This document shows positions 37,285-64,000 of a DNA stretch of 64,000 nt, in pieces. The stretch is from positions 19,034,001 through 19,098,000 of the forward strand of contig OZ241833.1 of assembly GCA_965202585.1 (NCBI GenBank). Reading direction: 5' to 3'. The position numbers and the translations under genes were made by a program. Under the pieces are notes generated by a model, which worked only from the letters and a program-made list of their open reading frames with translations, made no database searches and was not told where the DNA came from. Within the stretch, counting starts at the first letter, position 1. The number at the start of each line of letters is the position of its first letter. This stretch comes from Thalia democratica. Lineage: Eukaryota.

Positions 37285-38009
37285 ATAACTACAAAAGGTA
37301 CTGTAAGCTTAGTCAGCCTAAAATAAAGAGTTTATTTATTTTTTTGACTTTAGGAACATCAAAATGAATTTTTTTATGACTTTCTAGTAAGGTATTAAAA
37401 AAGATCACCTTAAAAAAAACTATTAACTAAAAATAAAGATAATAAATACATAAACACATTAAATTCATAAACGTTTCCTTTAATTAAATTGATCTTTTGC
37501 TTTCTTCATACTACTACTAGTACTTGTTAAATACTAATTAATCTACTTAAAATGTTTATAAAACTTTTTTTTGTTAACTAGTTAGATTCAAAGACTTAAA
37601 TTGTATTTCGACTTAACTTTTTAATTAACATTATTGGTTAATAGTAAACAAAACAGAGAGCACATGCTATACGTTAACTTTAAGTATATAATTTTTATAA
37701 TACCTTAACCGGATAACTGTAGGCCGGAAACTAATACTTTGTATACTTACAAATAATTACTGTTGAATAATGTGTCAAAGGTTTTAAGTAGCTTTTTATA
37801 AGAAATTATAAACTAATAAACTTTTATTAATAAAACACTGTACTCGTAGCTTTAAAAAATAATTCATAAAAAAAGTGTATATAAAATCACATCAAAGATT
37901 TATGATAAATTAATTAAACTCTTAAAAAGTGTTTTTACAAAAAAAAAGGTTATGCCTGAGTCCTTTTTTACTCTTCGTTAAAACCTGCGAGTTTCTAGTG
38001 TAAGCCTGA

Positions 38010-40330: not shown

Positions 40331-41590
40331 TATTAATGAAGGTAAACACATAGTTTAGGATTAAATTGCACTACCAAAGGGCTTAGCGTTGATAGATATA
40401 CTTAAAAATATCAGGTAATAGATTTCTGAGGTCTTTAATATTTTATTACGTAAAAAAACACTTACATATTGCTTCCTTCCAATTTGTAATAAACACTTAT
40501 CAGAAATTATAAATTATTAGAACTTTTATCTTTTGATAAACCTGCTTATAGTTTTTTAAAAAACTTTTACACGTTTAAAAATCACGTTTTTTATTTATTT
40601 CTTAAATTAAATGATAGTATGTTACTTATATTTAGTATTTGAAAATATGCTATGACAAACATTTAATTTTGTTTTAGTTTATTGAAATTATTAATGTTGT
40701 ACAGTTTTTTAACAATATACAATATTTAGAGTGTTTGTAATAAAAAAAAAACGGTTTGAGCTAGCAATAAAAATAAAGTGGCAGGTTAATGCAAAAAAAA
40801 AAACTAAAAAACACTTTCGTGTTGTTGTCAAACTTATTTGAAGAAACCATAAACTTCAAAGGCCAATAATAAAAGAAATAAAAAACATAGTTAAAAAATT
40901 TACTAGAACATGTTAAATAAACAACATAATGAGTTTTGGCGGGATAAAAACAACTGTATAAAACTCGTGCATATTAAAAGTTTACAAGAAGAGTTCTCAT
41001 ATGCTGCAATTGCCTCCAACTCTTACTTGCAATTTAGGTAGAAATAGTTTAGCGATAAAATTTTATTTTCAACTTCTCCCACCTAAATTGATATAGCGTT
41101 GTTAATAATTGTCTAATAAATTTATTTTATTTTTATTTTTAAGATAGTTTTTATGAAGCAAAACAAATTATATAGATTTTTTTGATACATTAGAAAGCTA
41201 CTTAAAATCATAAAGTTTAGTAAACTATATATTAAACCCTTATTTAAAGTAAATATCATCAAATAGTTGTGCTTTCTTTATATTGAATCTTTATAAAGGG
41301 GTTTACCATCATATTGGAATCATTAGGAAAAACTATCAAAAATGTTGACAAATTTTATAAACAAATAACTTTGTATGTAAACACTGAAATTCAGAAAGTA
41401 GTTTTTTTTAATAAATCATACCTTGCAAATTGATTTTACTTTCTTATGATTTATACATTATAGCAATTGTAATAAATGCACTTTGAAAATTTTAACTTCA
41501 ACAAAATTAAAAAAAAGTAAGTATCATAGTACTTCATACTTTTAACTTTTTTAAAGTTTAATTAGTCTAATTAAGCAATAAAAAATAACC

Positions 41591-41712
41591 TTAAGCCAAA
41601 TTCATTTTCCTTTGTCTCCTTTTTCTAATAAGACATACTGTGACACATATAAGAGCGATAAGTAGAACTCCTCCGATGACTCCGACAACTATCAAGATCG
41701 TCCTCAATCGTG
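41591..41712 (-). CDS. Transmembrane helix and short basic cytoplasmic tail (last coding exon)
   Basis: [24 protein letters not shown] followed by [11 protein letters not shown]; TAA at 41591-41593. Confidence 0.85.
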
Positions 41713-44700
41713 CTGTGTTATAAAAAATGTTTTAGTGTTTTGTTTTGTCTTTAGTGAAAAATTCAGACTAATTTACGATAAAATTTATTTAAAAGTATAC
41801 CCGTTTTTAGTCGATCATTAAATATAAATTCTAGATATTCAAAAAACTCACAAAAATCTTCACACTGCGGACCATCATACATAAGTGTGCATCTAAAAAT
41901 TTTTAGTAAATTTAAAAAGTGTTTAAGTACTTTAGTAGAAAAATTTCAAATTAAGTGCTTACTTAAAATATGCACTCAATAGTATTAAACATTTTAGCTC
42001 TCTGAAAACAGATTATTTATGTACTTTTTTATAGTATTAAGGCTACATCTAAGTATTTTTCATTTAAAACTCTTACGTTTTGTAAATGGAAAACCTGACC
42101 AAACATTTTTTTTTACTTTTAATCTTACACAGAAAAATTCCTTAGTACGAGAGAATTTATAAACTAAGGAAGCCACCAAAAATAAAGTTTTCATAAACTC
42201 ACGTGCAAACAGGGTTTCCAGTTGTATTAGTAGGAGTGCAAGTTGCTCCATTCAGACAATAATCATTACTGCATTGGTCTGTAATTTTGTTTCATATTTA
42301 ATAAAAATTGTCTTAAACTAAAAAAATCTTAAATGTTGTTAAAACTACCTATACAAGTTTCATTCTCTTGAACAGTTGTACCGGGCGGACATTGGCAGGT
42401 GTAACTACCAATCGTGTCGAAGCAGTTCTGGCCAGATAGACATGGATTATCTAAGCATTCATTTACGTTTACACACTCGCTTGTACCAAATAAGTCATAT
42501 CCAGCGTTACACGAACATTCGAAACCTTTATTCGAAATATTTGATAAAGTATTAGTAGTACTTTGTTATAGTTATTTTTTTAGGTTATTTAAAAGTCTAA
42601 AACAAATTATACTTGATGACAAAAAGTAAAATTATTAGAACTAGAAACCAACATAATTAAAATTACTCATTTAAGCAAGACGACTATAACTAAACTAAAG
42701 GTATTCTTGAAAAGATAATACATAAGTAGCAGTTAACTAAAAAAAAAACGTTCTCAGAACATCACTAACAAATGATGTAGCTAAGATTATGAAGATGAAC
42801 ATTTTATACTTATTGATAAGAGTTGTCCTGAAATGCAGGATTTTTTTATTAGTAATAATGAAATACTTGAATCTGTAAATCATTTAAAAGATAAAATACT
42901 CAGAACAGCAGAAAATATACCTTCGTATTTTTTGAAACGAATTATCAGCTTTCTCATTTTCCCAATCTCGTTAATTTTTAATTGCTCTTTAGCAATATCT
43001 TTTATACCAAGGCAATGAAAAATATCTTATATTATACCAATATTCAAAAAAGGAAACAAAAATAATCCATTAAACTATAGACCAATTTCACTAACTAGTA
43101 GCTTTTGCAGATCTTTTGAACATATAATTTCATTAAAAAATACTTAATCATCTTTTCTTAAATAATCTTATTTCTCCGAAACAATTTGGTTTTCTTCCTA
43201 AACGAACTTCATGTATTCAATTATTGGATTGCCTTCATTCATGGTTAGTATCTTTTTTTACCAATAAATCTATCAATGTAATTTATACAGACATTTAGAA
43301 AGCGTTTGACTCTGTCTCTCATTTTAAGTTAATTAAAACTTTATCTCAATACAAAATTAATAGAAATCTAGTTGAATGGTTCAAAGAATTTCTTCAGGAA
43401 AGAACACAAAGAGTAGTTATCGGTAACACGTTTTCAGAATCCTTACCAATTTTTAGTGGAGTTCCGCAAGGAGGGGTTATAGGTCCACTGTTATTTATAA
43501 TTTATATAAATGATATAGCCTTAGAGGTTGACTCTAATAGCAACATTAAGCTTTTTGCAGACGACACAAAAATATTTAGCCAATCTAACTTAGTTTTACA
43601 AAAATCTTTAGATAAAATCTACTATTGGTTAAAAGAAAGGAGATTAAACCTAAATCCCAGCAAATGTCATGTTTTGAATATTCGCAAAAGTACACCTATT
43701 CCAGCGTTTGATTTTAAAATAAACAATGCAATCTTACCTAAAACTGAGGTATTTAAAGACCTTGGAATTTTTATTTCAGATAATTTGAAATGGAACCATC
43801 ATATTAACTTTATTTACCGTAATGCATCAATTTTATCTTTTCAAGTTCTAAAAAGCTTTATATCTACGGATTTGGTAATTCTCAAGAAACTGTACCTAGT
43901 TTACATCCGTCCTAAGATGGAATACAACACACCTTTATGGTCTCCATATTCTATAAAAGACATCAACCAACTAGAATCTATTCAAAAAAAATTTAAGAGA
44001 TTAATCTTTAATCGGTGCAACATTTCATATACGTCTTACATAGACAGACTAACAAAGCTTAATATAAAAACTTTAGAGTACAGAAGACTTGAATTTGATC
44101 TAATTACTTTTTTTAAACTGATTAACAATGAAACTACTATTGATTCTCAAACTTTCTTTAAACCTTATGAAAATAATTACTCACTCAGAGGTAATAATAG
44201 AAAATATACATGCAAATATCATTTCAACTATGTTGGTTGGCACAAATCTTTTTTCTATCGTTCGGTAAAAATGTGGAACAAACTTCCAAATGAACTAGTA
44301 TCGTGCAAAAATCTTAAACATTTTCGACCAAACTTAAAAAGATTTGATTTAAATAAAATATTTACCAGTAAAATTTATAAGTGATTAGTTTTGTTCATCT
44401 CTTTATCCATTGATTTGGTGTGTGGTATGTAGTTTATTGGTAGTTTAATCTGTAAGTTACACCTTTCACTTATAGATTTTAGGTACTTTTCAACTTTGAT
44501 TTTTTGGAAGGGCTGTTGTTAATGTGCTTTGGGCTTTAGATTTTGAAATAATTGAATATTCAGTTGATTCCTAAGCTAGATTTGTGAACTGTTGCTGCCA
44601 AATTTTTGAAGTGATTTTTGACTGAATTTGCCGTCATAACGAGTGGCAAATAGTAGCTGAGATGAATGTTCTGCAAGATGAAGACAGCTTCTGAAGATTT

Positions 44701-47700
44701 GACAGAAATGCTTGTTACAGGAATTTGTTGCTTTGGAACGTATAATTGGAGATTGGTGACTTTGGAATTGTTGAATATTTGGTTGTGAAAGTTTTAATTT
44801 ATTCAGTTTCTGCCTTGTATAAGTTTTATGTTTATGTTTATTTAATCACTGTAATTTGTTTTTTCTTTTTATGTTAGTGTCTTTCAGTTTAAGTGGCTTA
44901 GGTTTTAATGCCTAGGTCCTTCGTTGGACAATAAACTTAATAATAATAATAATTTAATAAATAAAAGGAATATTTAAAGACAAAAAGTTAATTATTACCC
45001 AATAACTTAAAAGTTAAAATTTTCAAAGTGAAAAATATAAAGCAAGTGTTTAAACCTCCGACAGTGTTGGTGCATATCTGATCGCATGGGGAAGGATCAG
45101 CTGCACATTCATCCACATCAGTACACTCACTTCCTGAATACCCATCATTACACGGGCAATCGTAAGTGGTGTCTGAAGTCGCATTGCAAACTGATTGATC
45201 GGGGCATGCTGCCGTCATACATGGTTCATCCACTAATATGAGTTAAAAGTCAGTTTCATAAATGTAACATGATTTCAAACATTTAAACTTTACATATTTT
45301 GGATAACTTTCTAAAGTTAAAACTAAATAAATACATATGTATACATAGTTTATTTTGAAAAACCTTTATTACTAAAGTTAAAGTAGAAATAAAAACTTAA
45401 ATACTTACCAATAACTGTATCCCTGAAATATCCTGGTTCACCTTGAGTATCATTGAAGTTTCTTAAGAGTTCTTCTGCACCTACTGGTGAGCTTGGGTCT
45501 GACAGTGCTTGAATACTGTGAATGTTTAATAACAACTATTAGACATAAAATTTTGTGAGTTTTTGGTTTGTAAAAGTTTATATACGTGAACATAGTTTGT
45601 AGAAATGCACTGTATTTTTTGGCTTTGTAAAATGTTTTCAAATAATTCTTAATTAAAAAACAACAGTTTATATCTAATAGTTATTTATTTAAACCTTACC
45701 ATATTTTACGTTATATACATTTATTCAAAATACGCTTAGTAAGTATAAATTTAGATACGCTGTCGGCGGCCTTCTACAAGTAATAGACCGAGTTAAGAGA
45801 CTCGGTTATTTGCTTGGTTATTTGCGAACGTCATACTTTTGTAATTTGTATAACAAATTAAATTAAAAAAAAAAACAACCAATCAGTTTTAGCTTTTTAA
45901 CAATGAGATTTTATACAATTCATTTACTCAAAAATTTTTTTGCTGTCATATTTACTAGTTTCAAACTTAAAAGAACTAACTAGGTGTTTTTTTTAAACAA
46001 ACGTCTATTGCGAAACTAAATAATAAGTTGTGGACCTTACTTTTCCAACCCTTGCTTTGATCAAGTTATTATCATTTTAAAACAAAAGTTAAATGAGCCC
46101 GACTTGGTGCTATCTAAAAAGAATTGCTTTTATAAATATCCTTTTTTAGTATATCAAAATTTACCTATAAAAAGTATAAAACTAATCTTTAATATAGCAA
46201 AAACAACTTACTTAACAAGAACTGATCCTTGCTGGAAAGACACGATGACAAATGTAACTGGCAAACCTGCATACTTCATTGCAAGCTGGGCGAGAACTTG
46301 AGCTTTCAAGTTAATATACGCCTCTGATGAAGCATTAAGAAGGTCTTCATTGAACTCAATACCATCGTTCAGTGTTAACTGGAGGTCAAACGCGGCTGTT
46401 GTTACGAAAAAACTTAATAGTAAAAGTTTTTGTTTTCCTTAAAATAGACCATATTTTATAAACTTTTATAGCATTTGGTTTCCACTAGAACTAGTGGATT
46501 GATGTAGAACCTACGGCTAATTTAGATGCTAAATGAAATAAATTAAAAACTTAAATAGTTTTCCTTGAGTCAAAAATTTAAACAAAAAGTCGTTCTAAAA
46601 CTCTCGATGATACAGTAATAAAAATAATATAGTTGACATTTTGTTAAAATAGTTTCAAAATATCTAGTTAGCTTTCCTATAAGTTTCGTTATAAGTTTAA
46701 ATCAAACCCTAAAAACTTACAGCTACAAGTGAGCCCGTCACCAACAAGGCCGTCCTCACAGGTACAAGTGAACTCTTCCGTTGAAACGTCAGTGCACGCG
46801 GCTCTGCTGTCGCAAGGGCTCGAAGAACACAGTGGAATGAACTCGCATTCTTCTGTTGGGGGATTTCCGATGTAGCCTGGAGCGCATGCGCACTGTGCAC
46901 TTTGGACCAACACTCCCAAGTTGGTACATTGCGCGTTTGCACCGCATGGGTTAGCTCCGCAAGGGTTCTCTGGTGGTACTAGTACAAAATTTAAGTATTA
47001 GTTAGTGGTGAAAAAAGTTAAGTTTTTAACTACAAAAAAAATTAAGTATTTTACTAACTGCTTTGCGGGTTTGTATAACAGATTCCTGAAGCTGATCCAT
47101 CGAATAATGAAATTAAATCAGTAGTAAATTCAGATGTTGAAACCAGTGTAACTCTGTTAAAAAAAGAAAAAAATGGACGGTGTTTTTAGAAAAATGTTAT
47201 ATCTATTTTTTTGTTTAATATGAATGTATATTACAAGTCTAACGACTCCATAAACTTACACAGCAAACTCATTATCGCCGTCAAATCCTTCAAACGTCTG
47301 CACAGTTGCTGCTCCTCCAAAGTTTGCGTTTATCTCTGCAACTACAGACTCCTGTGTTGGATCAATCAAAGAACAACCGCTTGCAAGTGTCAAGTAAACC
47401 TTCTGCGTCGCTGTAATTTGTAATTTTAAAAAAACTACAGTAACGTATAATTGAAAAGTATACCAATTAAGATAAACCATTTATAACTTTGTTTTTACAT
47501 GTTTATAATAAATGTAATAATAAAACTCTTAACTATAAATATTCTTAAAAAAAAAAACTAATGAAAATATTTATTAAAATTAATAAAACTAGCAAAAGTT
47601 AAATTTGTTAAAAATAATAAAAAGTTAAAACTATTTCAATGAAGTATTTTTGCATGATAAAAATAAGTTTTTAATTCTTATGGTGCAAATGTTAATAACT

Positions 47701-50700
47701 TCATATTGTTTTAAAAATTCAATTTGATCAAAAACTATCATAAGTTAAACAACGTACCGAAACAGCTGCTACCGTCACCAACAAAACCGCCTTTGCAGGC
47801 GCAAGTGAACGATCCCGGGCTGTTCTCACAGTTTGCGTTGACACTGCACAAGTCGGTACCACACTCGTCAATATCCACACATGACACCAGTGGGTTTCCT
47901 TGGTAACCACTTGGGCACGAACATACAAAGCTATTAAAACAAGTTACAACCATTTATTATTGTTGTAAAATATATTACTGCATTGTTTCTAAGGAAAGAT
48001 CTAAAAAGTATTTAATGCAAATACAAACAATTAATATTCAGCTATAAAGTTTTGTTTCAATAAAAACCACAAATAGTTTAAAATAAAAACAAAACAGAAA
48101 TTTAAAACCATAATAGAAATATTCTATGCTTTTGTACTCAGAAATTGAAATATATTAATGCGTATGTTAGTGTATTAAGAATATAATTTTTTAATTAAAG
48201 AAAGTTGCTGGTTAAAATACAAATTATTTTTTTCATATGACTTTATAAAAAATACCTTCCGTCAGTGTTGGCGCACTCGGCCGAGGTTCCGCATGGTGAC
48301 GCATCGCATTCGTTGACGTCCGTACACTCGACACCGTTTCCTTGGTAACCAGTGTTGCAAGCGCAAGTGAATCCTCCAATTACGTTCGAGCACGCAGCGT
48401 TGCTATCGCAGTTGTTAAGAGTGGGCGAACTGCATTCGTCGACGTCAATACATGAAACTCCGTCACCGCTGTGTTTAGTACGTATATTGACAAATCATTC
48501 GGTAGTTAAATTATTTAAAGTTTTCTAAGCTGATTATTGTTTAGTAATTTGACTGAGACAACACTAAATCCGATATAGTAACAACTTCAACGTAAAACAA
48601 ACCAACACAGAAAGTGGTTTACAATATAACTATTAGCTCAACAAAACTGTTGCTTCATATGTACCTGAAGCCCGCCTTGCATGTGCACGAGAATCCTGGA
48701 GCGAGGTCCTGGCAATCTGCGTTGTTGTCGCAGTTGTTCAGCGCCGGGTCCAGGCACTCGTCGATGTTCGTGCAGGTCAGCCCGTCGCCTTCGAAGCCGT
48801 CCAGGCAGGCGCACGTGTAGCTTCCCTCGGTGTCGGTGCAAGCGGCGTTGTTGTCGCAATCGTTGAGCGATGAGGAAGAACATTCGTCTACGCTCACGCA
48901 GACCTTTGATGGTAGTTAATAGTAAAAAAAATCTACTGAAAATTAGTAAGCAAATTTTTTTTTGTCAAAAAATATCTCTTTTTTAAGCTTTAGTATTTAC
49001 ATACTGTTTTAATTGAATTGGAAAATACTAACATTGTCGAGTTTATTATAGCCACTTATGCATCTGCACAAGAAACTGCCTTCGGTGTCAATGCAACCAG
49101 AATTTTCTCCGCACGGCGACGCTAGACACTCGTTTACGTTCAAGCAAGAAGTTCCTGTTTTGGTATTATATTTTTAAAAATGTAATTTAATAATCAATTT
49201 CAAATAGTATTTCATGGAAATTTCTTTCGATAAAAGGTTAAATTGAAAAGGCTATAATATAGCTCATAAACAATCTGTCAAGTGAAATACAAACCGAACT
49301 ACCATTTACAAATCAATTTATTAGACATTTTCAATACAATAAAATAAACAGATGTTAAAAACGGTTTGGTTCTGTCACTTGACAGATTGTTTATGAGCTA
49401 TATTATAGCCTTTTTGATTTGATATTTAAAACTGTACAACTGTCTGAAATAGTAGTGAATTGGCTTTTGTTCTGACCCCGGATACGGCTTACTTGATTTC
49501 CTAACTAAAGGTTAAATTGAGTAATTTATATGTCATGCTATTTGCTTTAAATTCTGCTTTACAAAACAAAAAAAACTTTTTTCACAAAACTTAAGTTTCA
49601 CGATTAAAATATTGATCAACTGAAAGAACGAAAGCAAACTTGAAAGTTTTAGTTTAACAACAAAACAACAAACCATCATAAACAAATCCGGCTGTACAAG
49701 TACATTCAAATCCAACCAACAAGTCAGTACAAGCAGCTGTGGTCGGACATGGCGTTGTGAGACATTGGTTCAGGTCTGTTAAATTTATTAGTTATCAGTT
49801 TTTGGTTATAATACGTGCATAATAGCTTAGTTTCTGAACTATTTCTGGTTTGTTTTGAAAATTCAGAGGTTTTTATTGTATTTTGATCAATCATTTTTTA
49901 AAACTGAAAATTTTGATACATTGTCATATACGGTTTAGAATAGTACTTTTCTAAACGTGTAGATGATGAATGGTGATATCATTATAGTTAAAGTGTGAAG
50001 TGTTTAAACTATAAAAAAACTAAATAAAAGTTGTAAAGCTTGTACTTTTCAAAAAAATATTTTGATAAGACAATTTTTCTAAACTACCTATTAAAGGTTT
50101 TTTTTGTTCAAGTATTTACATACTAGTTTTACATTAATAGCTTAATAACGATAATAATTCCTTGTGCTTACTGGCAGTAGGTGATCCAACAAACAATTCT
50201 CTGTTAAAGTCAGAACTGTTCTTGAATTCATTGACAAACAGCTCTGAACTTGCAATAACACGATCAGAAAACACTTGATGCCTATTTGTTTTTGTTTAAT
50301 TTTTAACTTTGCTTAATTACGTAGTAAAACTTATAAGATATCATGATATTTGTATAAAAAAACATATTACTTTAGTTAGAAATCAAACACAACCTCTTTA
50401 TAACCAAAATTAAAAAATAGGTTTAATTTTATAAAAAAATTACTTATATAATTTTAAATTAGTTCGTATAATATCTAACTTTGTATCTTACATATAAAAA
50501 TTACTATCGACTATTGTTTGGTTTATTCAGACAGGTTTTTGATTAATTTTGAAAATAATTTTCATAAGTAAACTTTGTTTCTTTAGCAAAAGCATCTATC
50601 AAAAAACGACATTCAAAAAAACTAGTATTCACCATGCAACTGTGTTATCGCCATCTTGCCAAAACTCTACGATTTGTACGTTAGAGAAACCATTGGCAGC

Positions 50701-53700
50701 AGAGTAAGCGTTGGAAAGCTCTTCTACTACCTGAGATTGCAAGGCAGCATATTCAGGCGAGCTTGTATTTCTGTATGCAGAAATGTAGCTTCCAATCTCC
50801 GAAGCACTGACAGTAACCTCAAGTGTGAAGCTCTTTACCGGACCTTTAATTTTTTTTAATTTAATTGCTTATTGTGCAATGTTTTAAATATCAAAACGTT
50901 TGATTATTTCTAAATTAAATGAAAAGTTATTTTCATCTTTTAATAAAAAGTTTTGTTAAAATTTTACGATGACTTATATAACAAAAATTTATAATAAATG
51001 CATATAATCTTTTTATATCTACACTTTGAAGAAGGTTGTAAGTAATAGATGATAAAATAATATTATTATAATATCATTATAGTTGTGTAACCTGTTTCTA
51101 CGACAAGTTCAGTCGGCTCGCTTACTCTTCCATCAGCGTTAACAGCTTGGGTCGAAAATGTGTAAACAGTGTTTAACCTGAATAGTAGTAGTCAGTTTAT
51201 TTATAAAAACTAGAAAAAAATTGTGCATAGATAATTCTTTTATTATTGTTTGAGTTGTAACTAGTTTTCTTATGTAATTTACAAAAAAAAATACAAGGTG
51301 ATACTTGCCATACTAGTGCGGTAATAAACAAAAAATAAACAAACCACTGTATGTAAACTTTATAACCCAACTAACCTAGCATTAGTGAAAATTATAGTGC
51401 TGGTTGTTTCCAAAGTTTGCGAGAAATCAACAACTCCCCCTTCAACTCCTTCGACGGTAATTGGGAGGGCTCCCATTGGCAGGACAACTGCGATTGTGAT
51501 TCCGCTGTCAACGGAAGATGACATCAGAGTCAGTTGCACAGGGTCCGTTACTGTTGTAATTTAGAAAAGGGGTTATAAGCATCATAAAACTGTTTTTAAG
51601 CTAAGTTGATAAAAATAACTGATGAAAATAGATTAAAGCTTGACTTAGTTTTTTATTTTTTATAATTAAGAAATATAAGTTAACTGAAAAATGAACTTAA
51701 TATAATAAAAAAAAACAACTTATTAATAGCTTTTACTAAGATAAGAATAAAAAAGATAAGTTATACAAAGAAAGTAAAAAAGTACTTATTATTGTAAGTA
51801 AAAGCTTCACCTAATACATTTTTAATTATGAGCAGAAACACTATTAAAAGTTTGTTACTTTGTCGGATAATGTATTTAATTAAAAAAACAACCCATGGTT
51901 TATACTACTAATGCAAAAAACCATAATAAGCTTAATAAATAAACTATACTAACCAGTGTGAACGGTTTCTGCCAAACCAAATTCGCTGGCTCCGGCATTG
52001 TAAATAGCCTTAGCTGAAACAACGTATTCTGTACCCGAAGATAGGCTCGACAGTACAACACTGGCGTCTTCTTGCGCCAATTCATCTCCGTTCACATTTA
52101 CTACATAAGACACAGCACCAGAGACCTCACTGATTGTTACCGATATTTCGTTTGTGCTAACAGAAGTCACAGAAACAGATGGTCCTCCGACAATTACTAT
52201 TTGAATGAAATTTAATTATTACTTAAACGTCATTTACGTTGTAGTTTTAGGTAAGTTTTAATTTCTGACAACCATAAAAAAAATTAAAACTTAATTTTAC
52301 TTATACAGTATACAGAAATCGTTTTAATATAAAACTTTTAAAGTATGTTTAAAATAATTTAAATAACTAACACACAATAATTTCTAACTAAAAAGATAAA
52401 ACTTGAAAAATACTAATTGAAATTAAAAAAAAAAAACTAAATCTTGCAAAAAGTATAAAAGATAACCTGTGTAGACACTAGTTGAAGTTCTACCGCTGTC
52501 TCCAGCTTCGTTACTTGCAGAAACTTTAAAAGTGTACAGAGTGCTTGGCTCGAGACCCTCGGCTCTGAACTCGTTAGTGTCTGCATCAACTCTTACTTCA
52601 ATTGCTTCTGCGCCAGAGGACTCGTCAGTGCCTGCATCAACTACGGAGGCGCTGTACCTTACAGAGTATTCGGATGCACCTTTGACTGATGCCCACTGAA
52701 TGCCGACCGAGCTGGCAGTTTGCAAAGAAACACTGACAAATGAAGGTGCCGAAGGAACTGTGTATAAATATAAAACTAAGGTTATTTATCAAAGTTTATG
52801 GATATTTTTATAATAAAGTAAGACATGCATGTTCAAGCCATGTATGAGTTTACTTGCAAATAGTTACTTTTAAAGTTTTGTCAATTTTAACATTTAGATG
52901 ATATAAAAAATACTAAAAAAAATACAACTCCAGCTTACCGGTCGTCAAATTAGCAAGTCCGGCCACTGACGGTATGCCGACCACCGTCGAAACAACTTCG
53001 ACTTGGTACGCGGTTCCTGGTTGGAGAGAAGTGACTCGAACGCTGTTGCCGTCCACGAAAGGCACGACGCCGTTCGCAACAACCACGTCCTCTTCTGCCG
53101 TCACGTCGTTCACCTCGTAAATGTTGAGATCGATGTTAGGCAGCGAGTCCCACGACAAAAAGAAGGAGGTCGAAGTTATCTCAGTGACGGAAACAACAGG
53201 CGGCGTTGGTCCTAAACGTGCAATAAAAGTTTAAGTTGTTGTGTGGTAGTGAAAAAATAGTTTTTGATGTATCTAATATCTAAGTAGGTTAAGTAGCTTT
53301 AGGCCTTAACGAACAAAATTTTAGCAGTATTTAGCTTAAATAAGTATTCGCTGGTTTAATCAAATAAGAATAAAACTTTTTTTTGCAATTTAAGTCACAA
53401 AAAAAAAACAAACTCGTTCTGATTTCGATCTGCCCGCTTTCGAAACTGTTTCCTGAAAGACCAACAGCAGTCACGCTGAACAAGTACGCGATGCCTGGTC
53501 TGAGTGACGTCACAGTGGTTTCCAGGGATGTGGTGCTCACATCTCTTGATACTGAATCATTTAGTGATCTGTAAATTTTATAAATCAGTTGTAAGCCATT
53601 TTAATAAACAAAAACATCATGTTGATACAAGAAATGCCATTGAAACTGTTTATTTAAAAAAGTTTTTAAATAGCCCATCAAACAATTTATCAGCTACCTT

Positions 53701-56700
53701 TTTATTCCTTTTAACTAAAAAAACAATCATACATGTTTTTTTTTTATTTTACGAAAAAAATGAAAAACTTTAAACAAACTAACTCTTCAACATGCACAAT
53801 ATAAAATGTTGCACCGGCTGCAGCTTCAAATGTGATAGTAACGCTGTCCGTAGTAATTGAAACTCTAGTTGGAGTACTTGAATTTGCAGGTTCTAAAAAC
53901 AATAAAATCACATCAAAAATATTTTACGCCTTCTTAAATTGATTAGGCTCTATGTAAAACTATGATTCATATGCTTACGCAGAAATATAAGAAGCGATTA
54001 GCTTTTTATTAAACCAGGTAATATTTTGTCAACTTACGAGTTATAGCGTTAATACAGTTCTCTTCTGTGAACTGCCTGACACCAACAGATACATCAGAAA
54101 CTGTTTTTCCAACTACACATAACTGGTATGAAACACCGGCTCGAATGCCATCTTCAAAGTCGAAAGTGTTGATCACGTTGCTAAAAAATTGTTTTTTAAA
54201 CTTATAGATTATTTAACAAAAAATGTTTGATTATATGATTAACTATGTTTAAACAATTATGTTTTAAAAATGTACCATAATAATTATACTATAACTTCAC
54301 TTTTAGCATAATGATTTAGTTTTAAACATTTAACCGACTTCGGTGTTTTACAATATGTTATAATTTAACTTTGTAAAAAAACATAAATATACAAAATTAA
54401 CATCTAACTTTCTTTTTACTGTAGCAATAACTGTATCTGACTGTTTGATAGTTACATCGTACTCATTTACACCTTTTGGTCTGTTTTTAATTAAAGTAAT
54501 AGAAGTCTGTGTCACAGAAACAGCATCCTCAGCAAATTGAACAGGCAACGGTCCTGTATTAATAGACAGGTGTTTTTAAAGATTTAAAATAAATAGTATA
54601 ACTTTTTTTTTCAGAATTAAATAGTCTTTAATATTAAACTATTGATATAAAGGGTTGCATTGAACAAAAAATAAAATTGAATAAGTATGTATACTAGTTT
54701 TTATAAAAATTTTATGCTGCATTACATTTTAATGAAAAATTAACAAATAAATAAGTCAAAATAATGTCTAAAACCTATAAGAAAACTAACTAGTTATTTG
54801 ATTTATAGTTTCTGATGGAATAGTACCCTGAATTTCACCAATAAAAGGCACTACGACTAAGTTGTAAACAGTTCCAGATTCTAAGTCGCTTGCTGTGAAC
54901 CCAACTTCCTCAACAACATCTTGGAAAACTTCACTGGTGCTATTTCTAAGTTGCACGGTGTAATTTGTGGCGTACTTAACTGGTTGCCAGTTAAAGGAAA
55001 TCGCATTCAAATCAACATCGATTGCTGTTACTCCTTCCGGCTGAGCAGGGCCTAAAACAAAATTAGTTTAATTTAAGTAGTCTTTGCTCAGAACCTCACT
55101 TTTCATTTAATAGCAGTAAAGTAGTGTTTTTTACCGATCGTTTTTAAATAACTTTAGTATTTGAATCAAAAATGTTTGAATTTAGAAAAATTTAAGAAGA
55201 TATCAACGCAACTTTTAATAAATAAAAGTTATAAACATTTTTTTAACTCTATACAAAGCTGTCGGTGTGTTAAGTATTGATTGATATTTAGATTACTTTA
55301 AAATAAATGTTTATACATTTTATAAGGTAAAACTGTGAATACCTGAAACTTGGGTTATGCTCTCACTGTAATTTCCAATTCCAGCAGAATAGACTGCCCT
55401 AACTGACAATTGGTAAGAAGTTGATGGTTGCACATCAAATTGACAGTTAAGCGAGTCTGATTCACACAAAAGCACGTCACCGGTTTCGCTGGTAGCACTA
55501 GCAATGTAAGATGTAGCACCGTCTACTGGGCTCCAAGTGATGTTTATCGAAGTTGAAGTTACACCAGTCACTTCTAAGCCTTGTGGGACTGCGAGTGCTA
55601 AAAGTTTTATGAAAAACGTTATTAGTTGTATAAACTTTTTTAAACACTTTGATTAGTTGATATTTGTTAGATATTTTTTTTTCATGACTGTATAAAAAAA
55701 TTTTAAACTTTTTTTCTTTAAGTTGCTTAATTTTTTTCAATTATAAGGTTTAGTTTAGGTTTAATTTAAAAATAGACTAACGTACTTGTTTATAAAAAGA
55801 AACTTGAGAATTATCGAAATAGCGTTTAAATTATAAAAAAATATCGTTTTGTTTATAAATAAAGCATCATTTATAAAGATTTTTTTCTCCTTTTATCGAC
55901 CATGATACGCTTCAGTATCTCGTAACAATTTAAATTATTTAATCAAGCCTATCATTAACACAACGTTTCCATTGTGCATGATGTTTAAAATTGAGTTGAA
56001 ACTGTTTGAAAAATTTAAATAGATCATTATTTTTAGTTCCTTATTTGAAACACGGTTTTGATTGTTAAAAAAGGGAACCTAATAAATCATACATACAACA
56101 ATTAATGACGTAGTAAGACAGTATAGTCTTTTGTTGCTATGTTTTACAAATTTGAAACTAACTGGTAGTAAACTGGGTGTCAACGTTGCCAGAGGTCAAC
56201 GAACTGCTGTCAAACAACTTAATAGCGTTCACAACTGCTCTGTATTCTGTACCGCTTTGCAGATTTATGAACGTGTAACTGGTGTCGTTGAGCACAACTT
56301 CATTCAAAAGTTCTTCCCCTCCGAACAAGGAAACACCGTATGAGGTTGCTCCGTAGGGACTTTCAAACGACAGTATGGTGAAGAAGTCAGATGAAACCGT
56401 TCTCAAATTCGTCGGATTATCAGGAACTGCATTTAAAAAAATATATATTATAGCTTTAATCTAGTGTATATTAGTTATTTATAAATAAAGCTAAGTAAAT
56501 AAACTTGTTTCATAAAAGTAAATACTAGTTTCAACATTATACGAAACAAACTTTAATAAGATTAAAATTTGAGTTCTTTAATAAATGTTATTCAACTTTA
56601 AAACTTCGTTTGCTTAGATGTAAAGTTTGTGTTAGTTTAAAAAAATTAATACTTAAGTAGTACTGATTAAAATTGTTCAAATATCAGCTTAGAGAATAAA

Positions 56701-59700
56701 TCAAAGGCTGTTCAAAGATACTAATTACGATTAAAATTCCAAAATCTTTTTATTATTATTTTATAATTAAAAATTGAAAACCTGTAATGTTATTGAAAGT
56801 CGCGATAGTTAAGTAATTTTTGATACTTTATCTTTACACTTAACAGTAAATATATAAATAACGAAAATGATTCAATTTTTTGTAAAAACTAGAAATCAAA
56901 AATGAAACTAGTTTATTAAAAAATACTCTTTCAACTGACGGTACTCATGTGTTAAGCATCTCAAATAATGCTTGCTAAGCTTAATTAGAAAAACATTTTG
57001 TTGACATATTTTTTGTATTTTAAAGTTTTATTGAATTAGTTTGTGATAGTTTGAAGTTTTAAACATTGTTAATACTAGTCTTATAAAACTTACAAATTAA
57101 TTATAGGACCTTGAAAATAGTTACACACTTATACTGTGCCAAGTATTATTAATAGTAAAGTAACCCATGGAAATAAGCAATACTTGAGGAAAAGTTAAGA
57201 TTTTTTAATCAAAGTCGCAAGGACTAACCAGTTGAAAAGGTGTTTGCTTCTCCGAAGTTACTCGAGGCACCTGAGCTGTAAACACCTCTTACTTGTACAC
57301 TATGGTTTGTTCCTCCAATTAAACCAACAACAGAACATTTCAACTCTGATGACAGGGAAGCTTCGCATTCGGCTAAAATAATATTATTTAATTATTACAC
57401 GTTTTATTAGCAAACAAAAACTTAAACTTTTACTTAAAAAAAATATATATCTTTTTTTTTTTAAAGTTAATTTAAGCTTATATTCATACTTTTGTATGTA
57501 AATATAATGTCAATAGCTGAAAGTTACATAAAAAGTGAGGAAAAGTAAGAGTACTTATTTTACTTGTTAAAGGCTGTTGTATTGAACCTTAAATGTAACG
57601 CATGATTGGGAATCAGGGCGTAGAACACATTTGAAAAATTTTAAATGTACAGCTAATCTTGCATGTAAGTATTTCGTAATTTTTTACATATATGAAAACC
57701 GGAAAATATTTGTTCAACTACTTGGTATTATATAATTTCAATGTTTTGTTTATTTTGTGCATATTAATAACCTAGTATTACGTTACATCCTATAAACTAG
57801 AACTCATGCTTTATCAAGCGCTTTAAGTTTAAATATTTTACATAAGCTAATTCAAAAGTAGTTACAGTAAAACAGCAACATAATCGAGCGACGTTTCAGT
57901 ATATTTACCTTCAGAAACGCGTGACTCTTCGCTTGATGATGCCCTTATGACGTAATGATGAACTCCCTCGTGAGGGTTCACCACACGCAGGTCAAAGCTG
58001 GAGTTGGTGGCAGCTTCCAACACCGCTGTTGCTTCAAACGGTTCTTGAACTGTATTTAATTGTTTGCTATTAGTTAACTTGGAAAGCTAATAATTTTTAC
58101 TACTTTTTTACTGTAAACAATATACAAATTCCCGTTGCTTAATTAGTTTGACTATCTAGTTTTAGTTAAAGGCTTAGTTTGTTTAGTTCTCGCTTAAAAA
58201 ATGTTTCATCTGTATAGTATTTTTGATTTGAATAAAGCTTTTCTTCAACTAATTGTATTTTAAAATAGACTCAGAAGTATATAAAATAAAATATAAACCA
58301 ACTTGTATATGTAATAAACGATTGTTCCAATCCAGAACCAAAATCGTTTTCGGCAATTATAACTATGGAGTACCTTGAACCACTTTCCAACCCTTCTATT
58401 GTAATGTTTTCAAACGAAGTATAATTTTCCTGAAGACAAATATTAATATTATGCACGAGTTAACATAGTTTATCTTTAAACGTTATACCGTAGCAAGAGA
58501 ATGTTTATGTAACTTAACATTGGTCAGACAAGAAAGAAAACTATACGGATATATATTTTTTATAATTAAGGATATTCAAGTAAAATGTTTTGATATCTTA
58601 GTTTTAATTAAAGCTGATATGTTTCTGCGCTTACAACTTTTTTACTACTTTGCTTTATCAGTTGAAACTTAAATAAGTTTATTAAAAACTTAAAACAAAA
58701 AATACTTTAGAAAACTAAGTAAAACGTTTGTCGAAGTAGCGTTTATTGTAATGTTTGTTCTGTATATATTTTTGGTTTACCAATGACCGAGAGTTCTTTT
58801 TATACACCTGCTCCTTTGACCTTCCTTATTAGCGTTAATTTCTTTTTATTTAGAAAAACACTTGAATTTATCTGCTTATTATTACTGGATTGTTTATAAC
58901 TATGCATAAAAATTTAATGCATTATTAAAAGTACGTTATATTTTTTTTACTATTTTTGAGTATTTATCCTTATAATTCATTGAAAAAATAAGTATTTTTA
59001 ACATAAAACAAATGACCGTTTACTTTAATTATTAATTTAAAGTAACGAATTAACAATAGTATATATATTTATTTGAAGTTTATCAGAAGGCATTAATATC
59101 CAAATGAGCATGAAAATATTTCCTTTATATAAAGCTTGTGTTGTTTTATTTTTGGCTCATTTTAACGTTAAAAAGTCACAAAAGCGCATTGGCAATTGTT
59201 GTTCATTGACATAAAACGTGATTTGATACATCGCTAAACTGTTTGAATAAAACTTATTATCTTATAAACTAGTATATTTCCTAGCTTTATAAGTTAACGA
59301 TAAACGTATTATAGAAGCAATTTATAACAAGTTAAAATTCGTCTAACTTTTGTCATTATAGTTTAAGAAATAAAATATATTTATAGACAGTTTTATAAAC
59401 TGTTGTTGATATCTACACTGCTATACAAAACAAAAGCTTTGATTTTAGCAATTTTAATTTATTAAGACAGGTTTTAAGTATCATATAAATGAATAGCTTC
59501 AGCTGTATATTTCGCTTACAATTAATTTAACAATTTTATGAAATATTTTTTTTTATAAAACCAGGTGTTATTTGCACCTGCTTACCTGAGAAACTCCGTT
59601 GGAAATATTCAACTTGTAATTAGTAGCTCCAAACACTGGGCTCCAAACGAAGCTTAAAGACGTGCTTGTTTGATTTGCAAGTGTGAAGTTTTGTACTCTT

Positions 59701-62700
59701 GCCGGCACTGATATGTTTAATATTTTAAAGCACTTAACTTATGCAAGTGTATACAATTTATTTTGAACAATTATTTATGTTTTACTAAAGAAAATAGTTA
59801 TTTTGAGAAAATAAATTTCTAATGAAGCACAACGTATTTGTATAGTTTAAAGAAAAACTGATTTAGTTAGTGTAAAATATTTTTATCATACGCACACGTT
59901 GTGAAATTAAATACTCCCGGGTTCGATATTGGGCCGTCTTGGTCAAAAGTAGCTACAGTCAGTGTGTAAGAAGTACCGCTTTCTAACAAAGAGAAACTTA
60001 TCGAGTTGGTCCTGCTAAAAACGGCACTTTCGGCAACCCTTCTTCCTGTGGATGCTTCCATCAGACGCAAATCGTATCCGCTGTTTTAAAAAACAAAATA
60101 TTTTATTGAAATATTACATCTATAAACAAATAAAGTGTATAAATGGTAAGTTACAACATTTTTGTTTAATCGTCATAAATTTTTCAAACATTGATAAAAA
60201 TTTTTGATTCAAAAATTAAAAATAAAAATAAAACATATGCACGAGTTTATAAAATATTTAGAACCAAAAATAAAGCTAAAGTTTAAATTTTCGAGCTAAA
60301 ACTAAAAAATTAATAACATTTGAAGCATAAACATTTACTTTCATATGGGAAATAAAGTTGATATTTTGTTTATATTTTTGTTTTCTTTTTTCTAAACTGT
60401 AGTTTAAAACAGAACGAAATAGATAAAGATACTTTAAAGTATTAGATAAAAAATATGCATTTACTTTATCAAAAAATCAAAAAAAAAAAAATTACAATAG
60501 AAGAGTTGCTGAACGTGGTGTTTCCCATTGTATTGTGATATCATTAGTAGTAATATTGGTTACACTGAATGAACTTGGATTTACTGCTCCTGTTGTAATA
60601 AACGTTGATACGTGACCATTTTATTCAAAATATATTTCAGTGTTTTATTTCACATAAAACAATCCAAGCGTAAAATAGCTTGGAATTTTCAAAGGTTAAA
60701 AAGCTTGACTTGTAAAATGATACATCAAAAAAGACAAATAAAAAATACTACTTGTTGAATTAACGATCGATACAACTGAGCTTCTTCCGAATTCTCCGAC
60801 TGCTTGTAAAGTGAAAGTAAATTCCTGCCCGCTCGGAAGTCCGGAAACCGAAAATGGGGAGTCAAAGACCGAGTAGTCGAGGTAAACATCGCTGCCCATA
60901 AGAACGGTGAAAGCGTACGAAACTGCATTCGGCTGCGGAGTGAACTCGAACTCCAGTGAGGAGCTCGTTCTTGCGATTGCCGTGAAGTTCATTACGTTTT
61001 GAGGAGCTGCAAAGTTTATTCAAGTTTAAAAACAAATTTTTAGTTAAAGTTAAGTTATAAAAACAACTACAGCCGCTTGATAAATGCATTTCAAATAGAA
61101 AAGAAAAACACGACACGAATTTTACATTCGTATACTAGGCTTGAGATTTTTTAAAAGGTTTTCAGATAAAGAATCGGCAACTTAAATCTTTATAAAACTT
61201 TCGTATCATTAAATTTGCATTAGTTATATAAATGTTTGTAAGTTAGATTTTGTTGTTTAAGTAAACCTTTTTTTATTGATACTTTTCGCTAACTACAAAC
61301 TGTTACTTTTACCATCATTTTTCGTGCAGAAACAAAGTTGCACTTTTTAGTTTATAGTTATATGTAGCCTTTTACTTTGGCAATAATATGATCTGAAAGC
61401 TTTAAAGACGCTTACCAGTTGTGAAAGTGACCACCTCTGAAGGTTCGCTTGCCGCCTGACCAATGTTTTCCTGGTCTATGCCTCTCACGGCAACCGTCAC
61501 GTTGTAAACGGTGCCTTCCTCCAAACCGGACAACTGAACTCGCTGCACGTCTTCTGATTGGTCAATTTCTCCGCTGACTTGGACGACGTCACTGGAAGAG
61601 GAGCGGGCCATCACCACATACGCGACGCTGCCTTCAGTTTGGTTAAACTGGACTTCGACGGAAGTTTGAGTGATGTTTTCGAGTTTGACGTTTGTGGGAG
61701 AGCTTGGTCCTTTAAAGAAGTATACAAATTGTTTTCGAACTCAACATTAAAATTATTAAATTTATTGTACCGTTTTTATACGTTAAAGCTTTTAAAATTT
61801 GTGTACTTTACTTGCAAATCATTAACCAAAACAGAGTTGTTTAGTTTAAAAATTTATAACAACGCTTTGTATTTAAACTTATTTTTAAAAAAATTAAATA
61901 AAATTGGAGTTTAAAGTTAACAAATCAAGGCTTTACTTGTTTGGAAATCAAAAGAAGCCTTGTCGCTTGACCCAGCTTCGTTAAAAGATGTGATTGACAG
62001 AGAGTAGTTTGTGCCTGCTCGTAAAGTGTCTTCAGTAAAATTGAAGCTTGTTGTTGTGAAAAACAAGCTGTTTGCATCATCGGCGTTCAGTGTGAAGTTA
62101 GCCAGAACTTCGCTTGCTGACTCAACAGTTAGAAAGTATGTGTCGGCTGATCTCACTGCAGGCCAAGAAAACTCTGCAGAATCGACTTCTACTCTTTCTA
62201 ATTGTACTGAGCTCGGTCTCGGTGGTGCTGTTTAGAAATTATTTAAAATGTTAAATAGTTTTTTTTATTAACAAAAAAGTAAAATACAACTCGAAATTTA
62301 AATTATTTATATATTTAGGTTGAATTAAGCCAACAATAAATAATTTTTACACCGTTTGAGCAGGTATCACGGTTAGTTCATAAAAAAATACTTTTAATCT
62401 TAAAAAAAAATTACTAACATTTGTACAGAAAATAAATCTAAAGACAAGATTTTGTGAAATAACTAAATTCATTACGATTTTTTTATTTTCTGAAAGAGTT
62501 TAATCTAAGAAAGACAGGTAATCGCAGAAATAGTCAACAAATACAATGAAACTACTGAAGCTCTTACAGTAAAACGAATAAGAACTTTAGTTAAAGTATT
62601 GACTTTTGAAATTGAAAAAGGTTACAGAGCTTTTATAAACTTTCTACAGTACTTTTTGTGTATGATTAGTTTTTTAATTGTCTTAACTTTTTTAAGATCA

Positions 62701-64000
62701 ATTTTAAACTATTTTTTTACTAATAAAATTTAAGAGAGTATTACAATATTTTTTTCGTTAAAATTTATTAGGGGTAAATATAAACAGTTTTAACAAAAGC
62801 TTTATAAAACAAAATGATCATAGAGGTTACACTATACTTACATGTGACTTGAGACACAGCAAGGACTCTTTCACTGTCGCCTGTGGAGTAACGAGCTGTT
62901 ACATAGACTGAATATTCGATTCCAGGCAACAGATCAAGTAAATTGAAGGTAGATGTGTTAGTTCTAAACGTCTAAAAAAACAAATCTTTTAAAAAACTAT
63001 ATTTATTAAAAAAATGACTTTTTTTATACTATATATATGTATTAAAATTTAAATTTTTAATAATATTTAGATTAAAAGGCTTAACTGTATGTTTAACGAT
63101 GAAAAATCAAGCTAACTTATATAAAACGAAATAACCTTCATCTGACTAAACTAATTAAAATTAAATATTTTTTCGAACAAAAAAAAAATTGTACTATAGA
63201 AACTTACAGTAAATAGGATGCTGCCGTTTTCAACATCTGCTGAATAATCAATAGCACCAGAGACCACTTCGAATAAGAGGTTGAAAGAGGTTTGCGTAAC
63301 ATCAGTCACAACAAAGTTAGACGGTTGAGGACGGTCTAAGATAAGGTTAGGTTATCATCAAAGTAAATATGTGTTTTAAATAAATATTTTTATAGTTGTT
63401 TTTATATTTAAGAAATTTTTAGCACTAATTTTTATTTTTTGTTTTAAATGTATTAAAAAGTTTGACGAATTTTTTTAATAGTTTTTTAAATGTAAAGTTT
63501 ATCAATAAATGTTTTCATTTGGATTAGTTGTTTAAAATGTACGAAATAATTTAACTTTATGAACTTATTTAAAGTACAACATTTTTATTCTTTGCTAAAA
63601 ATTAAAACAACTACTTTTTACGACTTTTTTATCAACATTTTAAATTTATCAATTTCCTACAAAGTAATCAAAAAAATAAATTGTAAAAAACTTTAAAACG
63701 ACTTAAATTATGCAGTCAGTAAAATATTGCACGCAAAAACCAACAACTAATATTGAAATTTACCAGTTTCGAAGTTTTCAGATATGCATCTTTCTCCTGC
63801 CGAGTTGACAGCACACACGGTAACAACGTACTCTGTTCCGTACAGCAAGTTTTCAAACGTGTAAGTTGGCATCCCGCGGAAAGTGTTGGTGCTTTCGACT
63901 TCTTCTAACGTGGTGGCAACCCTTAAAGTAACTCGGTAGTTGTCGACACCAATAACCTCGTCCCATTGTGACGCAACCGTGTTGTTAACCACGGTGAAGT
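41591..64000 (-). CDS. Giant single-pass membrane protein (FN3 array, SEA and Ca-binding EGF domains, TM, short tail); 5' end beyond the window
   Basis: 41 exons assembled by hand with GT-AG introns and consistent phases (7104 in-frame nt, 2367 aa plus stop): 63764-64000, 63208-63335, 62842-62971, 61937-62227, 61416-61709, 60752-61006, 60496-60589, 59896-60080, 59586-59707, 58303-58429, 57909-58049, 57229-57372, 56163-56426, 55343-55597, 54791-55051, 54409-54553, 54038-54180, 53784-53892, 53414-53568, 52939-53211, 52467-52757, 51954-52196, 51376-51550, 51092-51177, 50633-50843, 50172-50281, 49674-49775, 49033-49154, 48665-48903, 48256-48468, 47758-47930, 47260-47410, 47059-47153, 46721-46978, 46212-46395, 45409-45515, 45056-45232, 42349-42525, 42203-42278, 41852-41892, 41591-41712. 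Confidence 0.9.
42790..44965 (+). mobile_element. 5'-truncated CR1-clade LINE, antisense within an intron of the FN3/EGF gene
   Basis: [19 protein letters not shown]; [21 protein letters not shown]; LFADDTKIF; intact 236-aa C-terminal ORF at 43674-44384; 3' UTR ends in a (TAA)n tail at about 44937-44960; upstream stops and frameshifts. Confidence 0.9.
45409..46395 (-). CDS. Membrane-proximal SEA domain with GSVLV autoproteolysis-type motif
   Basis: [36 protein letters not shown]...[10 protein letters not shown]; GSVLV at 46214-46228. Confidence 0.8.
47758..49775 (-). CDS. Seven tandem EGF domains, mostly calcium-binding
   Basis: DVDEC/NVNEC/DIDEC starts and C.NT.GSF.C.C..G(F/Y).G.G..C pattern. 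Confidence 0.9.
49246..49414. repeat. Perfect 40-bp inverted repeat with an 89-bp spacer (foldback/MITE-like), intronic
   Basis: 49246-49285 is the exact reverse complement of 49375-49414. Confidence 0.9.
50172..50843 (-). CDS. First SEA-like domain (two exons)
   Basis: SFTLEV...[28 protein letters not shown]...[13 protein letters not shown] matches the SEA pattern; lacks GSVVV. Confidence 0.7.
51092..64000 (-). CDS. FN3 array (at least 17 fibronectin type III domains) of the membrane protein
   Basis: Repeating P..P..L....T..S..(W/F)..V.GA..Y...L.PGT.Y...V.A....G.S pattern; every domain boundary is a phase-1 intron. Confidence 0.9.

Follow-up and report, generated by a model that had tools for sequence, protein, structure and literature searches.

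A giant FN3-SEA-EGF membrane glycoprotein of the salp Thalia democratica with a mucin-like membrane-proximal module

Membrane mucins of the SEA type are cleaved within the SEA domain during folding and are displayed at the cell surface as heterodimers held together non-covalently; tension acts on the SEA domain, which can unfold, and force is needed to dissociate it (PMC9578598, PMC10556640). These mucins are said to have arisen in vertebrates (PMC9578598). Muc13 consists of a proline-, threonine- and serine-rich (PTS) region followed by SEA, EGF and transmembrane (TM) segments, and in chicken its PTS region is spread over many exons (PMC1552070). Here we describe a gene of Thalia democratica, a salp and hence a tunicate, whose 3' half lies in a 64,000-nucleotide stretch of contig OZ241833.1 (positions 19,034,001 to 19,098,000; the window). 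It is a single-copy, expressed and conserved gene that encodes a giant, non-enzymatic type I membrane glycoprotein. We favor, with some reserve, the view that this protein is a breakaway tether at the cell surface, of the same kind as the SEA-type membrane mucins and built with a folded FN3/EGF rod, and we found no described counterpart to it.

The window contains no N and comes from an AT-rich assembly of 802 Mb. Every coding open frame of the gene is on the minus strand. Exons were chained by a splice-aware procedure that combined codon log-odds with splice-site matrices and was retrained on the confident exons, and four junctions were patched by hand. Exons of the same style continue past the window end, where 60 kb of flanking DNA was fetched and scanned (coordinates above 64000 carry the window numbering on into this DNA), and the gene extends ~21 kb, possibly 40 kb, past the window. 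To carry the model further in the 5' direction had been proposed as a check by an earlier reading of the window made from its letters (the sequence-only reading), and the gene proves to be about twice as large as the part described there. The full model has 91 exons, is free of stops and consistent in phase; the window holds the 3' half in 40 exons. From the first EGF exon to the stop codon, the core model comprises 4,429 residues (473 kDa), and with the upstream Thr-rich exons, if they belong to the gene, it would comprise 4,862 residues, with a pI of ~4 and 112 N-glycosylation sequons.

In the full model the chain runs from a Thr-rich region, when this is included, through three EGF, one FN3, SEA0, 36 FN3, SEA1, seven EGF, an 83-residue module, two EGF, SEA3 and four EGF to a TM helix and a basic tail of 11 residues. 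There are thus 37 FN3 domains (two of them weak), 16 EGF domains and three profile-supported SEA domains, and FN3 makes up ~3,200 of the 4,429 core residues, about three quarters of the ectodomain. Within the window the order is 16 FN3, a 58-residue piece, SEA1, EGF1-7, the 83-residue module, EGF8-9, SEA3, EGF10-13, the short sequence SRLRT, the TM helix and the tail; from SEA1 to the tail, the spliced model agrees exactly with the order given by the sequence-only reading. The features are as follows, from the N-terminal side to the 3' end.

85867-85691, past the window, minus strand: Thr-rich exon of 59 residues, next to the first EGF exon on its upstream side; three ENA variants have the open frame at 84-94% identity.
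83.5-85.5 kb, past the window, minus strand: three N-terminal EGF exons; Pfam EGF_3/EGF_CA, above cut-offs in two of the three.
Exons at ~82.3-82.5 and ~80.0-80.1 kb, past the window, minus strand: SEA0; 22.8 bits with our SEA profile, 70 bits in our jackhmmer run.
51954..64000, first exon running to 64018, minus strand: FN3 #22-#37 (16 FN3 in 24 exons); Pfam fn3, our FN3 profile and a block duplication.
51376..51550, minus strand: 58-residue exon that separates SEA1 from the last FN3; compatible in phase with its neighbors, and without a Pfam match.
Exons 50806-50633 and 50281-50172, minus strand: SEA1; Pfam SEA 27.8 bits (50632-50868), above cut-off; our SEA profile 33.4 bits; hmmalign.
47758..49775, minus strand: EGF1-EGF7 in five exons; Pfam EGF_CA, EGF_3 and cEGF on the spliced sequence.
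47059..47410 (exons 47410-47260 and 47153-47059), minus strand: Cys-poor module of 83 residues, from the spliced model.
46721..46978, minus strand: EGF8-EGF9, of the non-calcium-binding type; Pfam EGF_3 and EGF; 3' junction 46721/46395 in RNA contigs.
Exons 46395-46212 and 45515-45409, minus strand: SEA3; our SEA profile 55.2 bits; RNA-confirmed junctions; FQQ-G/S-VLV at the autoproteolysis site.
Exons 45232-45056, 42525-42349, 42278-42203 and 41892-41852, minus strand: EGF10-EGF13; Pfam EGF families; all four junctions in RNA contigs; conserved in a relative.
41590..41712, minus strand: last coding exon, with SRLRT, a 24-residue TM helix, the 11-residue tail and the stop codon TAA at 41593-41591; read from the sequence, with junction 41852/41712 in RNA contigs.
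41083..41589, minus strand: intron of the 3' untranslated region (UTR), 507 nt, GT..AG, beginning one base past the stop; RNA contigs of three runs, with the joint at 41080/41588 (cut +2).
41001..41082, minus strand: start of the 3'UTR exon, which continues for at least 130 nt below 41001; RNA contigs.

The membrane end of the protein is fixed by RNA. Of the words sampled from 45000-53300, 6-10% occur in five RNA runs (marine metatranscriptomes of two studies), and contigs from three of these runs (two studies) were aligned on 41001-47000. The coding joints that they confirm (46721/46395, 46212/45515, 45409/45232, 45056/42525, 42349/42278, 42203/41892 and 41852/41712) are all GT..AG, lie on the minus strand and are identical to those of the model, and a further joint, 41590/41082, found in three runs, removes the 507-nt intron behind the stop codon. 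Because the RNA joins the TM exon, one base past the stop, to a 3'UTR exon with short open frames only, the coding sequence ends with the 11-residue tail and no catalytic domain follows. The sequence-only reading, which had described a long membrane protein with a TM helix, an 11-residue tail and no phosphatase, is borne out here, and the downstream catalytic domain that it had named as a finding that would speak against it is absent. GVIGG occurs in the TM helix, as do two cysteines close to the inner leaflet; the tail is basic, and its last residues, -MNLA, are not a class I PDZ motif. The TAAG/GT context of the 3'UTR intron is also kept in a related salp.

The SEA domains were compared with a profile built from 86 SEA instances taken from database matches, 26 of which carry Gly-Ser at the cleavage column. 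SEA0, SEA1 and SEA3 are mutually recognisable by profile, and the jackhmmer run started from SEA0 also recovers SEA1 and SEA3. With Pfam, the half-domain exon of SEA3 (46211-46438) gives a weak SEA match. At the cleavage column of the profile alignment, SEA0 and SEA3 have Gly-Ser (RPG-STVA and QQG-SVLV, respectively) and SEA1 has Gly-Asp. SEA0 and SEA3 are therefore predicted to self-cleave, whereas SEA1, lacking Gly-Ser at that column, probably does not.

In its membrane-proximal EGF-SEA-EGF-TM layout the protein matches the SEA-type transmembrane mucins, in which the sequence-only reading had noted SEA plus EGF next to the membrane, and SEA3 carries the Gly-Ser motif. Like the SEA-type mucins MUC13, MUC3, MUC12 and MUC17, it is a type I protein in which EGF, a Gly-Ser SEA and EGF precede a single TM helix, under a large glycosylated ectodomain; a possible N-terminal Thr-rich region made from many small repeat exons would add a likeness to chicken Muc13 (PMC1552070). 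The differences are also substantial: the bulk of the salp ectodomain consists of folded FN3 (37 domains) and not PTS, three or four SEA-type domains are spread along the chain together with 16 EGF, and the protein belongs to a tunicate. UMODL1 (olfactorin) likewise combines FN3, calcium-binding EGF, SEA and TM, but it has EMI, WAP and ZP domains and only two FN3 (PMC8874799), and EMI, WAP and ZP are all absent from the salp model. No WAP or ZP match was found in the exons scanned with Pfam. Between SEA1 and the TM helix all residues are assigned to EGF, SEA or the 83-residue module and the RNA junctions leave no hidden exon for a ZP domain, and elsewhere in the model no unassigned stretch is long enough for one. 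The statement of the sequence-only reading that the window holds no phosphatase, no ZP domain and no Ser/Thr repeats is correct; Thr-rich exons do occur upstream of it.

Database searches used unspliced queries, and with these no annotated ortholog of the giant FN3-SEA-EGF protein was found. When the SEA3 exon was compared with 1.84 billion representative proteins, there were ten matches: two exon-sized salp fragments (87% and 75% identity), multi-SEA fish proteins, ENA proteins and a 6,184-residue amphioxus protein, with the fish and amphioxus proteins at 37-51% identity over short stretches. The nearest SEA domains to SEA3 outside salps are those of the amphioxus multi-SEA/EGF giants (annotated "TECTA" and "serine-rich adhesin for platelets-like"; P0006 and P0019) and of the fish multi-SEA proteins (P0001, P0005 and P0007). 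One of the amphioxus proteins, P0006, also ends in EGF-SEA(GS)-EGF-TM; however, its tail is ~200 residues long, many SEA domains dominate the chain in this whole group, and none of the fish, ENA or amphioxus proteins matching SEA3 contains FN3. When the SEA/EGF part at the C-terminus of the amphioxus protein served as query, the matches were amphioxus paralogs, a Ciona "zonadhesin-like" protein and hemicentins, but no FN3-SEA-EGF protein. Nothing meaningful was found for the SEA3 exon in a sequence search of the PDB, and no description of a tunicate membrane protein with FN3, SEA and EGF domains turned up in the literature searched. The claim of the sequence-only reading that the architecture matches no named family therefore stands, inasmuch as the searches with the SEA3 exon and the amphioxus region gave no named ortholog. 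Two of the ENA proteins (P0004 and P0008; 1,858-1,977 residues) resemble SEA-type membrane mucins: long Ser/Thr-rich regions and four or five SEA domains with the GS site are followed by a TM helix and a tail that is short. Their source is marine and probably non-vertebrate.

Other described proteins share parts of the architecture. PTPRQ, PTPRB and usherin carry a very long FN3 array on a single-pass membrane anchor. The salp protein differs from the two phosphatases in having no phosphatase domain, its RNA-confirmed stop following after 11 residues, and in the SEA and EGF domains placed between rod and membrane; it differs from usherin in that LamG, laminin N-terminal and laminin-EGF domains are absent from the exons scanned (the extreme N-terminus being outside the model) and in its C-terminus. 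The MUC16-like arrangement, in which many SEA domains stand in tandem behind a PTS region, is also different, since the three profile-supported SEA domains of the salp protein are not in tandem but set apart by FN3 and EGF arrays.

The FN3 rod has a history that can be read from its own repeats. Pfam fn3 matches all ten of the single-exon FN3 domains tested in the window, seven of them above the curated cut-off, and a profile built from 19 FN3 exons of this gene counts 16 in the window, one short of the minimum of 17 given by the sequence-only reading. The exon 51376-51550, considered as a seventeenth, shows no FN3-profile or other Pfam signal; the first strand of SEA1 probably comes from the C-terminal end of this exon. 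For most positions, FN3 #6-21 pair with #22-37 at an offset of 16; aligned over 1,404 columns, the blocks share 32% identity and score 1,792, as against no more than 36 for shuffles. From this alignment we read that a 16-FN3 block was duplicated once, long ago, and that the window holds exactly the second copy. Other FN3-FN3 pairs within the array are only ~22% identical, and the array is for that reason not a recent expansion. Across the salp's own genome, matches to the FN3 profile are confined almost wholly to this gene. In both 16-FN3 copies (51954-64018 and 64.3-75.5 kb), the FN3 domains with one exon and those that are split are arranged alike.

All EGF exons of the window are matched by the Pfam families EGF_CA, EGF_3 and cEGF. 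EGF1-7 are mostly of the calcium-binding type, with the motifs NVNEC, SVDEC, NIDEC, DVDEC, DVNEC and DIDEC, and the protein as a whole has ten calcium-binding EGF consensus motifs. A 2.5-kb intron that splits EGF11 contains a LINE remnant (42785-44381, plus strand), whose 361-residue open frame at 43299-44381 matches Pfam RVT_1 (E=1.8e-23); the orthologous intron of the related salp is ~360 nt long and has no LINE. RNA contigs of run X2 that lie on this remnant are probably from other copies, because their identity is 90-99%, mostly below 99%. On the 3' side of the gene, reverse-transcriptase fragments at 37999-38752 (plus strand; weak RVT_1, E=1e-4) are probably a decayed LINE as well.

The 83-residue module had been labelled "SEA-like" in the sequence-only reading, a label that fails every statistical test for SEA: neither Pfam nor our SEA profile matches the module, hhalign gives E=0.12, and jackhmmer does not recruit it. 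Its similarity to SEA1 is weak (z=2.7, equalled by seven of 300 shuffles), although the two share a DGDN turn, at the GSVVV position, and a preceding helix-like stretch. An atlas search with its 49-residue exon gave phage and bacterial clusters at chance level only.

The C-terminal part of the gene is conserved in a related species. An ENA contig from this salp (L010) contains the exons from SEA3 to the stop with all splice sites kept; the exons are 86-97% identical in DNA, as compared with ~70% for two well-aligned introns, and dN/dS is 0.27 over 213 ectodomain codons. The exons are under purifying selection in the related salp. SEA3 is 83% identical between the two species, and the ectodomain exons differ at ~15-20% of residues, whereas the TM helix and tail are identical: over the 39 codons of the juxtamembrane, TM and tail segments (L010:2935-3054) there are four synonymous and no non-synonymous changes. 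That helix and basic tail are so strictly kept suggests an interaction with a partner or with lipid in or at the membrane, of which binding of ERM proteins would be only one possibility. For the apical location, the mechanosensory role and the ERM binding by the basic cluster that the sequence-only reading had put forward, this identity is the one relevant finding, and all three are conjecture. In the genome of T. democratica, the SEA3 exon and the exon of the 83-residue module each occur in one copy, and no paralog of either was found there.

Upstream of the core model, the content of the gene changes in character. At 96.5-103.6 kb there are at least 14 small exons, mostly 72-99 nt long, all of phase 1-1, and their splice sites are good; pooled with the Thr-rich 85.8-kb exon, these mini-exons (~370 residues) are 29% Thr. 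They sit in a tandem genomic repeat with a unit of 1,058 bp, whose copies are up to 96% identical; the array was detected with find_repeats, and Tandem Repeats Finder reported nothing on it, the period of 1,058 bp exceeding its limit. The stretch at 98.9-103.4 kb (L007:4864-9380) contains at least four copies, each with two or three phase 1-1 exons of ~87 nt that encode Thr/Ser/Asn-rich peptides with NTT sequons. The mini-exons could join the 85.8-kb exon in frame, which would give a multi-exon PTS-like region such as that of chicken Muc13 (PMC1552070). The 1,058-bp array may be a multi-exon mucin-like N-terminus of this gene, or it may be a separate gene. Spliced transcript fragments were sought with the Thr-rich exon as query, and only genomic open-frame fragments of relatives came back. 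There is no PTS in the window; given the conserved Thr-rich exon and the Thr-rich mini-exon array upstream, FN3 domains may not simply replace the mucin stalk, as the sequence-only reading had suggested.

In the breakaway tether that we favor, SEA3, and probably SEA0 too, would cut themselves at Gly-Ser on folding, as the SEA domains of membrane mucins do. The mature form would be a non-covalent heterodimer, in which a heavily N-glycosylated rod of FN3 and calcium-stiffened EGF domains, ~150-200 nm long, stands on a small stub of four EGF domains and the TM helix. Under mechanical load the SEA3 joint would part, shedding the rod instead of letting the membrane tear, and SEA0 would provide a second breakable joint near the distal end of the rod. 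As a "structured mucin", the protein would serve at the surface as a tether for protection, spacing or adhesion, and not as a receptor enzyme. Tandem calcium-binding EGF domains of the fibrillin type form stiff rods, and FN3 arrays form extensible ones; cleavage, rod length, shedding and surface role are all inferred from the parts, by analogy. It is possible, although we hold this only tentatively, that the protein is a tunicate "structured mucin" in the fuller sense that the EGF-SEA-EGF-TM module of membrane mucins is present, ~37 FN3 domains replace most of the sugar-coated stalk, and SEA0 and SEA3 act as mechanical fuses bracketing the rod.

Several points weigh against this scheme. The protein is not a mucin by definition, because the bulk of its ectodomain is folded FN3 and not PTS, and all membrane mucins have a far longer tail than its 11 residues, in which a class I PDZ motif is also lacking. 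Cleavage of the SEA domains is a prediction from the motif alone. The scheme does not account for the 83-residue module. Two hydrophobicity scans of ~85.3-115.4 kb gave no convincing candidate for a signal peptide or first exon, and a candidate at 87933 was set aside as being in the wrong phase. Finally, RNA contigs cover the exons from 46978 to the 3'UTR and do not reach the FN3 exons, and the joining of the latter to the SEA/EGF/TM exons is deduced from uninterrupted, phase-compatible exons that lack a stop or start signal.

This last point leaves room for the view that two genes have been read as one, an upstream gene for a secreted FN3 protein and a downstream gene for a SEA/EGF/TM protein. 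The RNA contigs span only 46978-41001, and the model upstream of that is ab initio; however, the exons from 85461 to 41591 form one open reading frame with no stop in it, and between the FN3 and SEA1 exons, where introns are short, there is no start codon with a signal peptide, no terminal exon and no other break, so that we consider two genes very unlikely. We give still less credence to descent from an R3-type receptor tyrosine phosphatase, of the PTPRB/PTPRQ kind with an FN3-only ectodomain, that has lost its phosphatase. The long FN3 array with a single TM helix would fit such an origin, as would a GAxxY motif after strand B in the FN3 domains, which we take to be common in R3 phosphatase ectodomains, but the ectodomain is not FN3-only, with SEA and 16 EGF domains present, and we know of no R3 phosphatase ectodomain that contains SEA or EGF. 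Nor is there a phosphatase remnant, the stop being followed by the UTR intron and an exon with short open frames only.

A rod of this length could instead bind the tunic or cuticle and fasten it to the epidermis, making the protein a matrix-anchoring adhesion receptor comparable to nematode MUA-3 and MUP-4. Those two proteins, which act at the interface between epidermis and exoskeleton, share with the salp protein its EGF arrays, followed by a membrane-proximal SEA and a TM helix; in addition they possess vWA and LDLa domains, their cytoplasmic tail is long and binds filaments, and they have no FN3 rod. Weak, below-cut-off matches to Pfam EGF_Mua-3 in two EGF exons, the strict conservation of the TM helix and tail, and the frequency of long FN3 rods in matrix proteins are all consistent with an anchor. 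Yet the salp model combines an FN3 rod with the absence of vWA and LDLa, its 11-residue tail cannot stand in for the long intermediate-filament-binding tail of MUA-3 and MUP-4, and anchorage through a SEA domain that can be cleaved close to the membrane would be weak. We therefore regard this reading as doubtful. An unlikely alternative use of the same joint is signalling, in which loss of the ectodomain at SEA3, by force or protease, would expose the EGF4-TM stub to further cleavage or free EGF-bearing ligand fragments. In other membrane proteins, regulated proteolysis is gated by domains resembling SEA (PMC10556640); the juxtamembrane segment and the GVIGG-bearing TM helix are identical between species, and this region gives a weak, below-cut-off match to the Pfam model of the ErbB1 TM-juxtamembrane segment. 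A basic tail of 11 residues is nevertheless implausibly short for a released signalling fragment, no EGF signature of receptor binding was seen, although none was looked for, and a rod of 37 FN3 domains would be unnecessary for such a role.

Two further observations concern DNA around the gene. An intronless open frame of 525 codons (L009:1313-2887, minus strand) encodes BACK and Kelch repeats with no BTB match; ENA assemblies are the source of all its relatives, ~70 distinct ones with 30-47% identity and a single one with 77%, which suggests a large lineage-specific expansion of intronless Kelch genes. Within an intron, 94 nt at 63598-63692 are 76% identical to two sites that lie 2 kb apart on another contig (C8, 53475956-53478061) and are probably a small dispersed repeat.

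The protein is not a new kind of system: its parts are all extracellular modules of an ordinary sort, and this genome has many giant, lineage-specific mosaics of them. A tunicate protein with a mucin-like membrane-proximal module nevertheless bears on how that module arose, and on whether, at the cell surface, a rod of folded domains can do the work of a disordered glycosylated stalk. If the fuller "structured mucin" reading is right, the anchoring module of membrane mucins would predate vertebrates, of which tunicates are the sister group, and the protein would be a natural example of a force-limited rod tether. The two SEA domains predicted to self-cleave at the ends of a rod of ~3,200 residues would make it a tractable system for the idea of SEA as a mechanical fuse. 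For the biology of salps, it is a candidate for a major protein of the cell surface or of the interface with the tunic.

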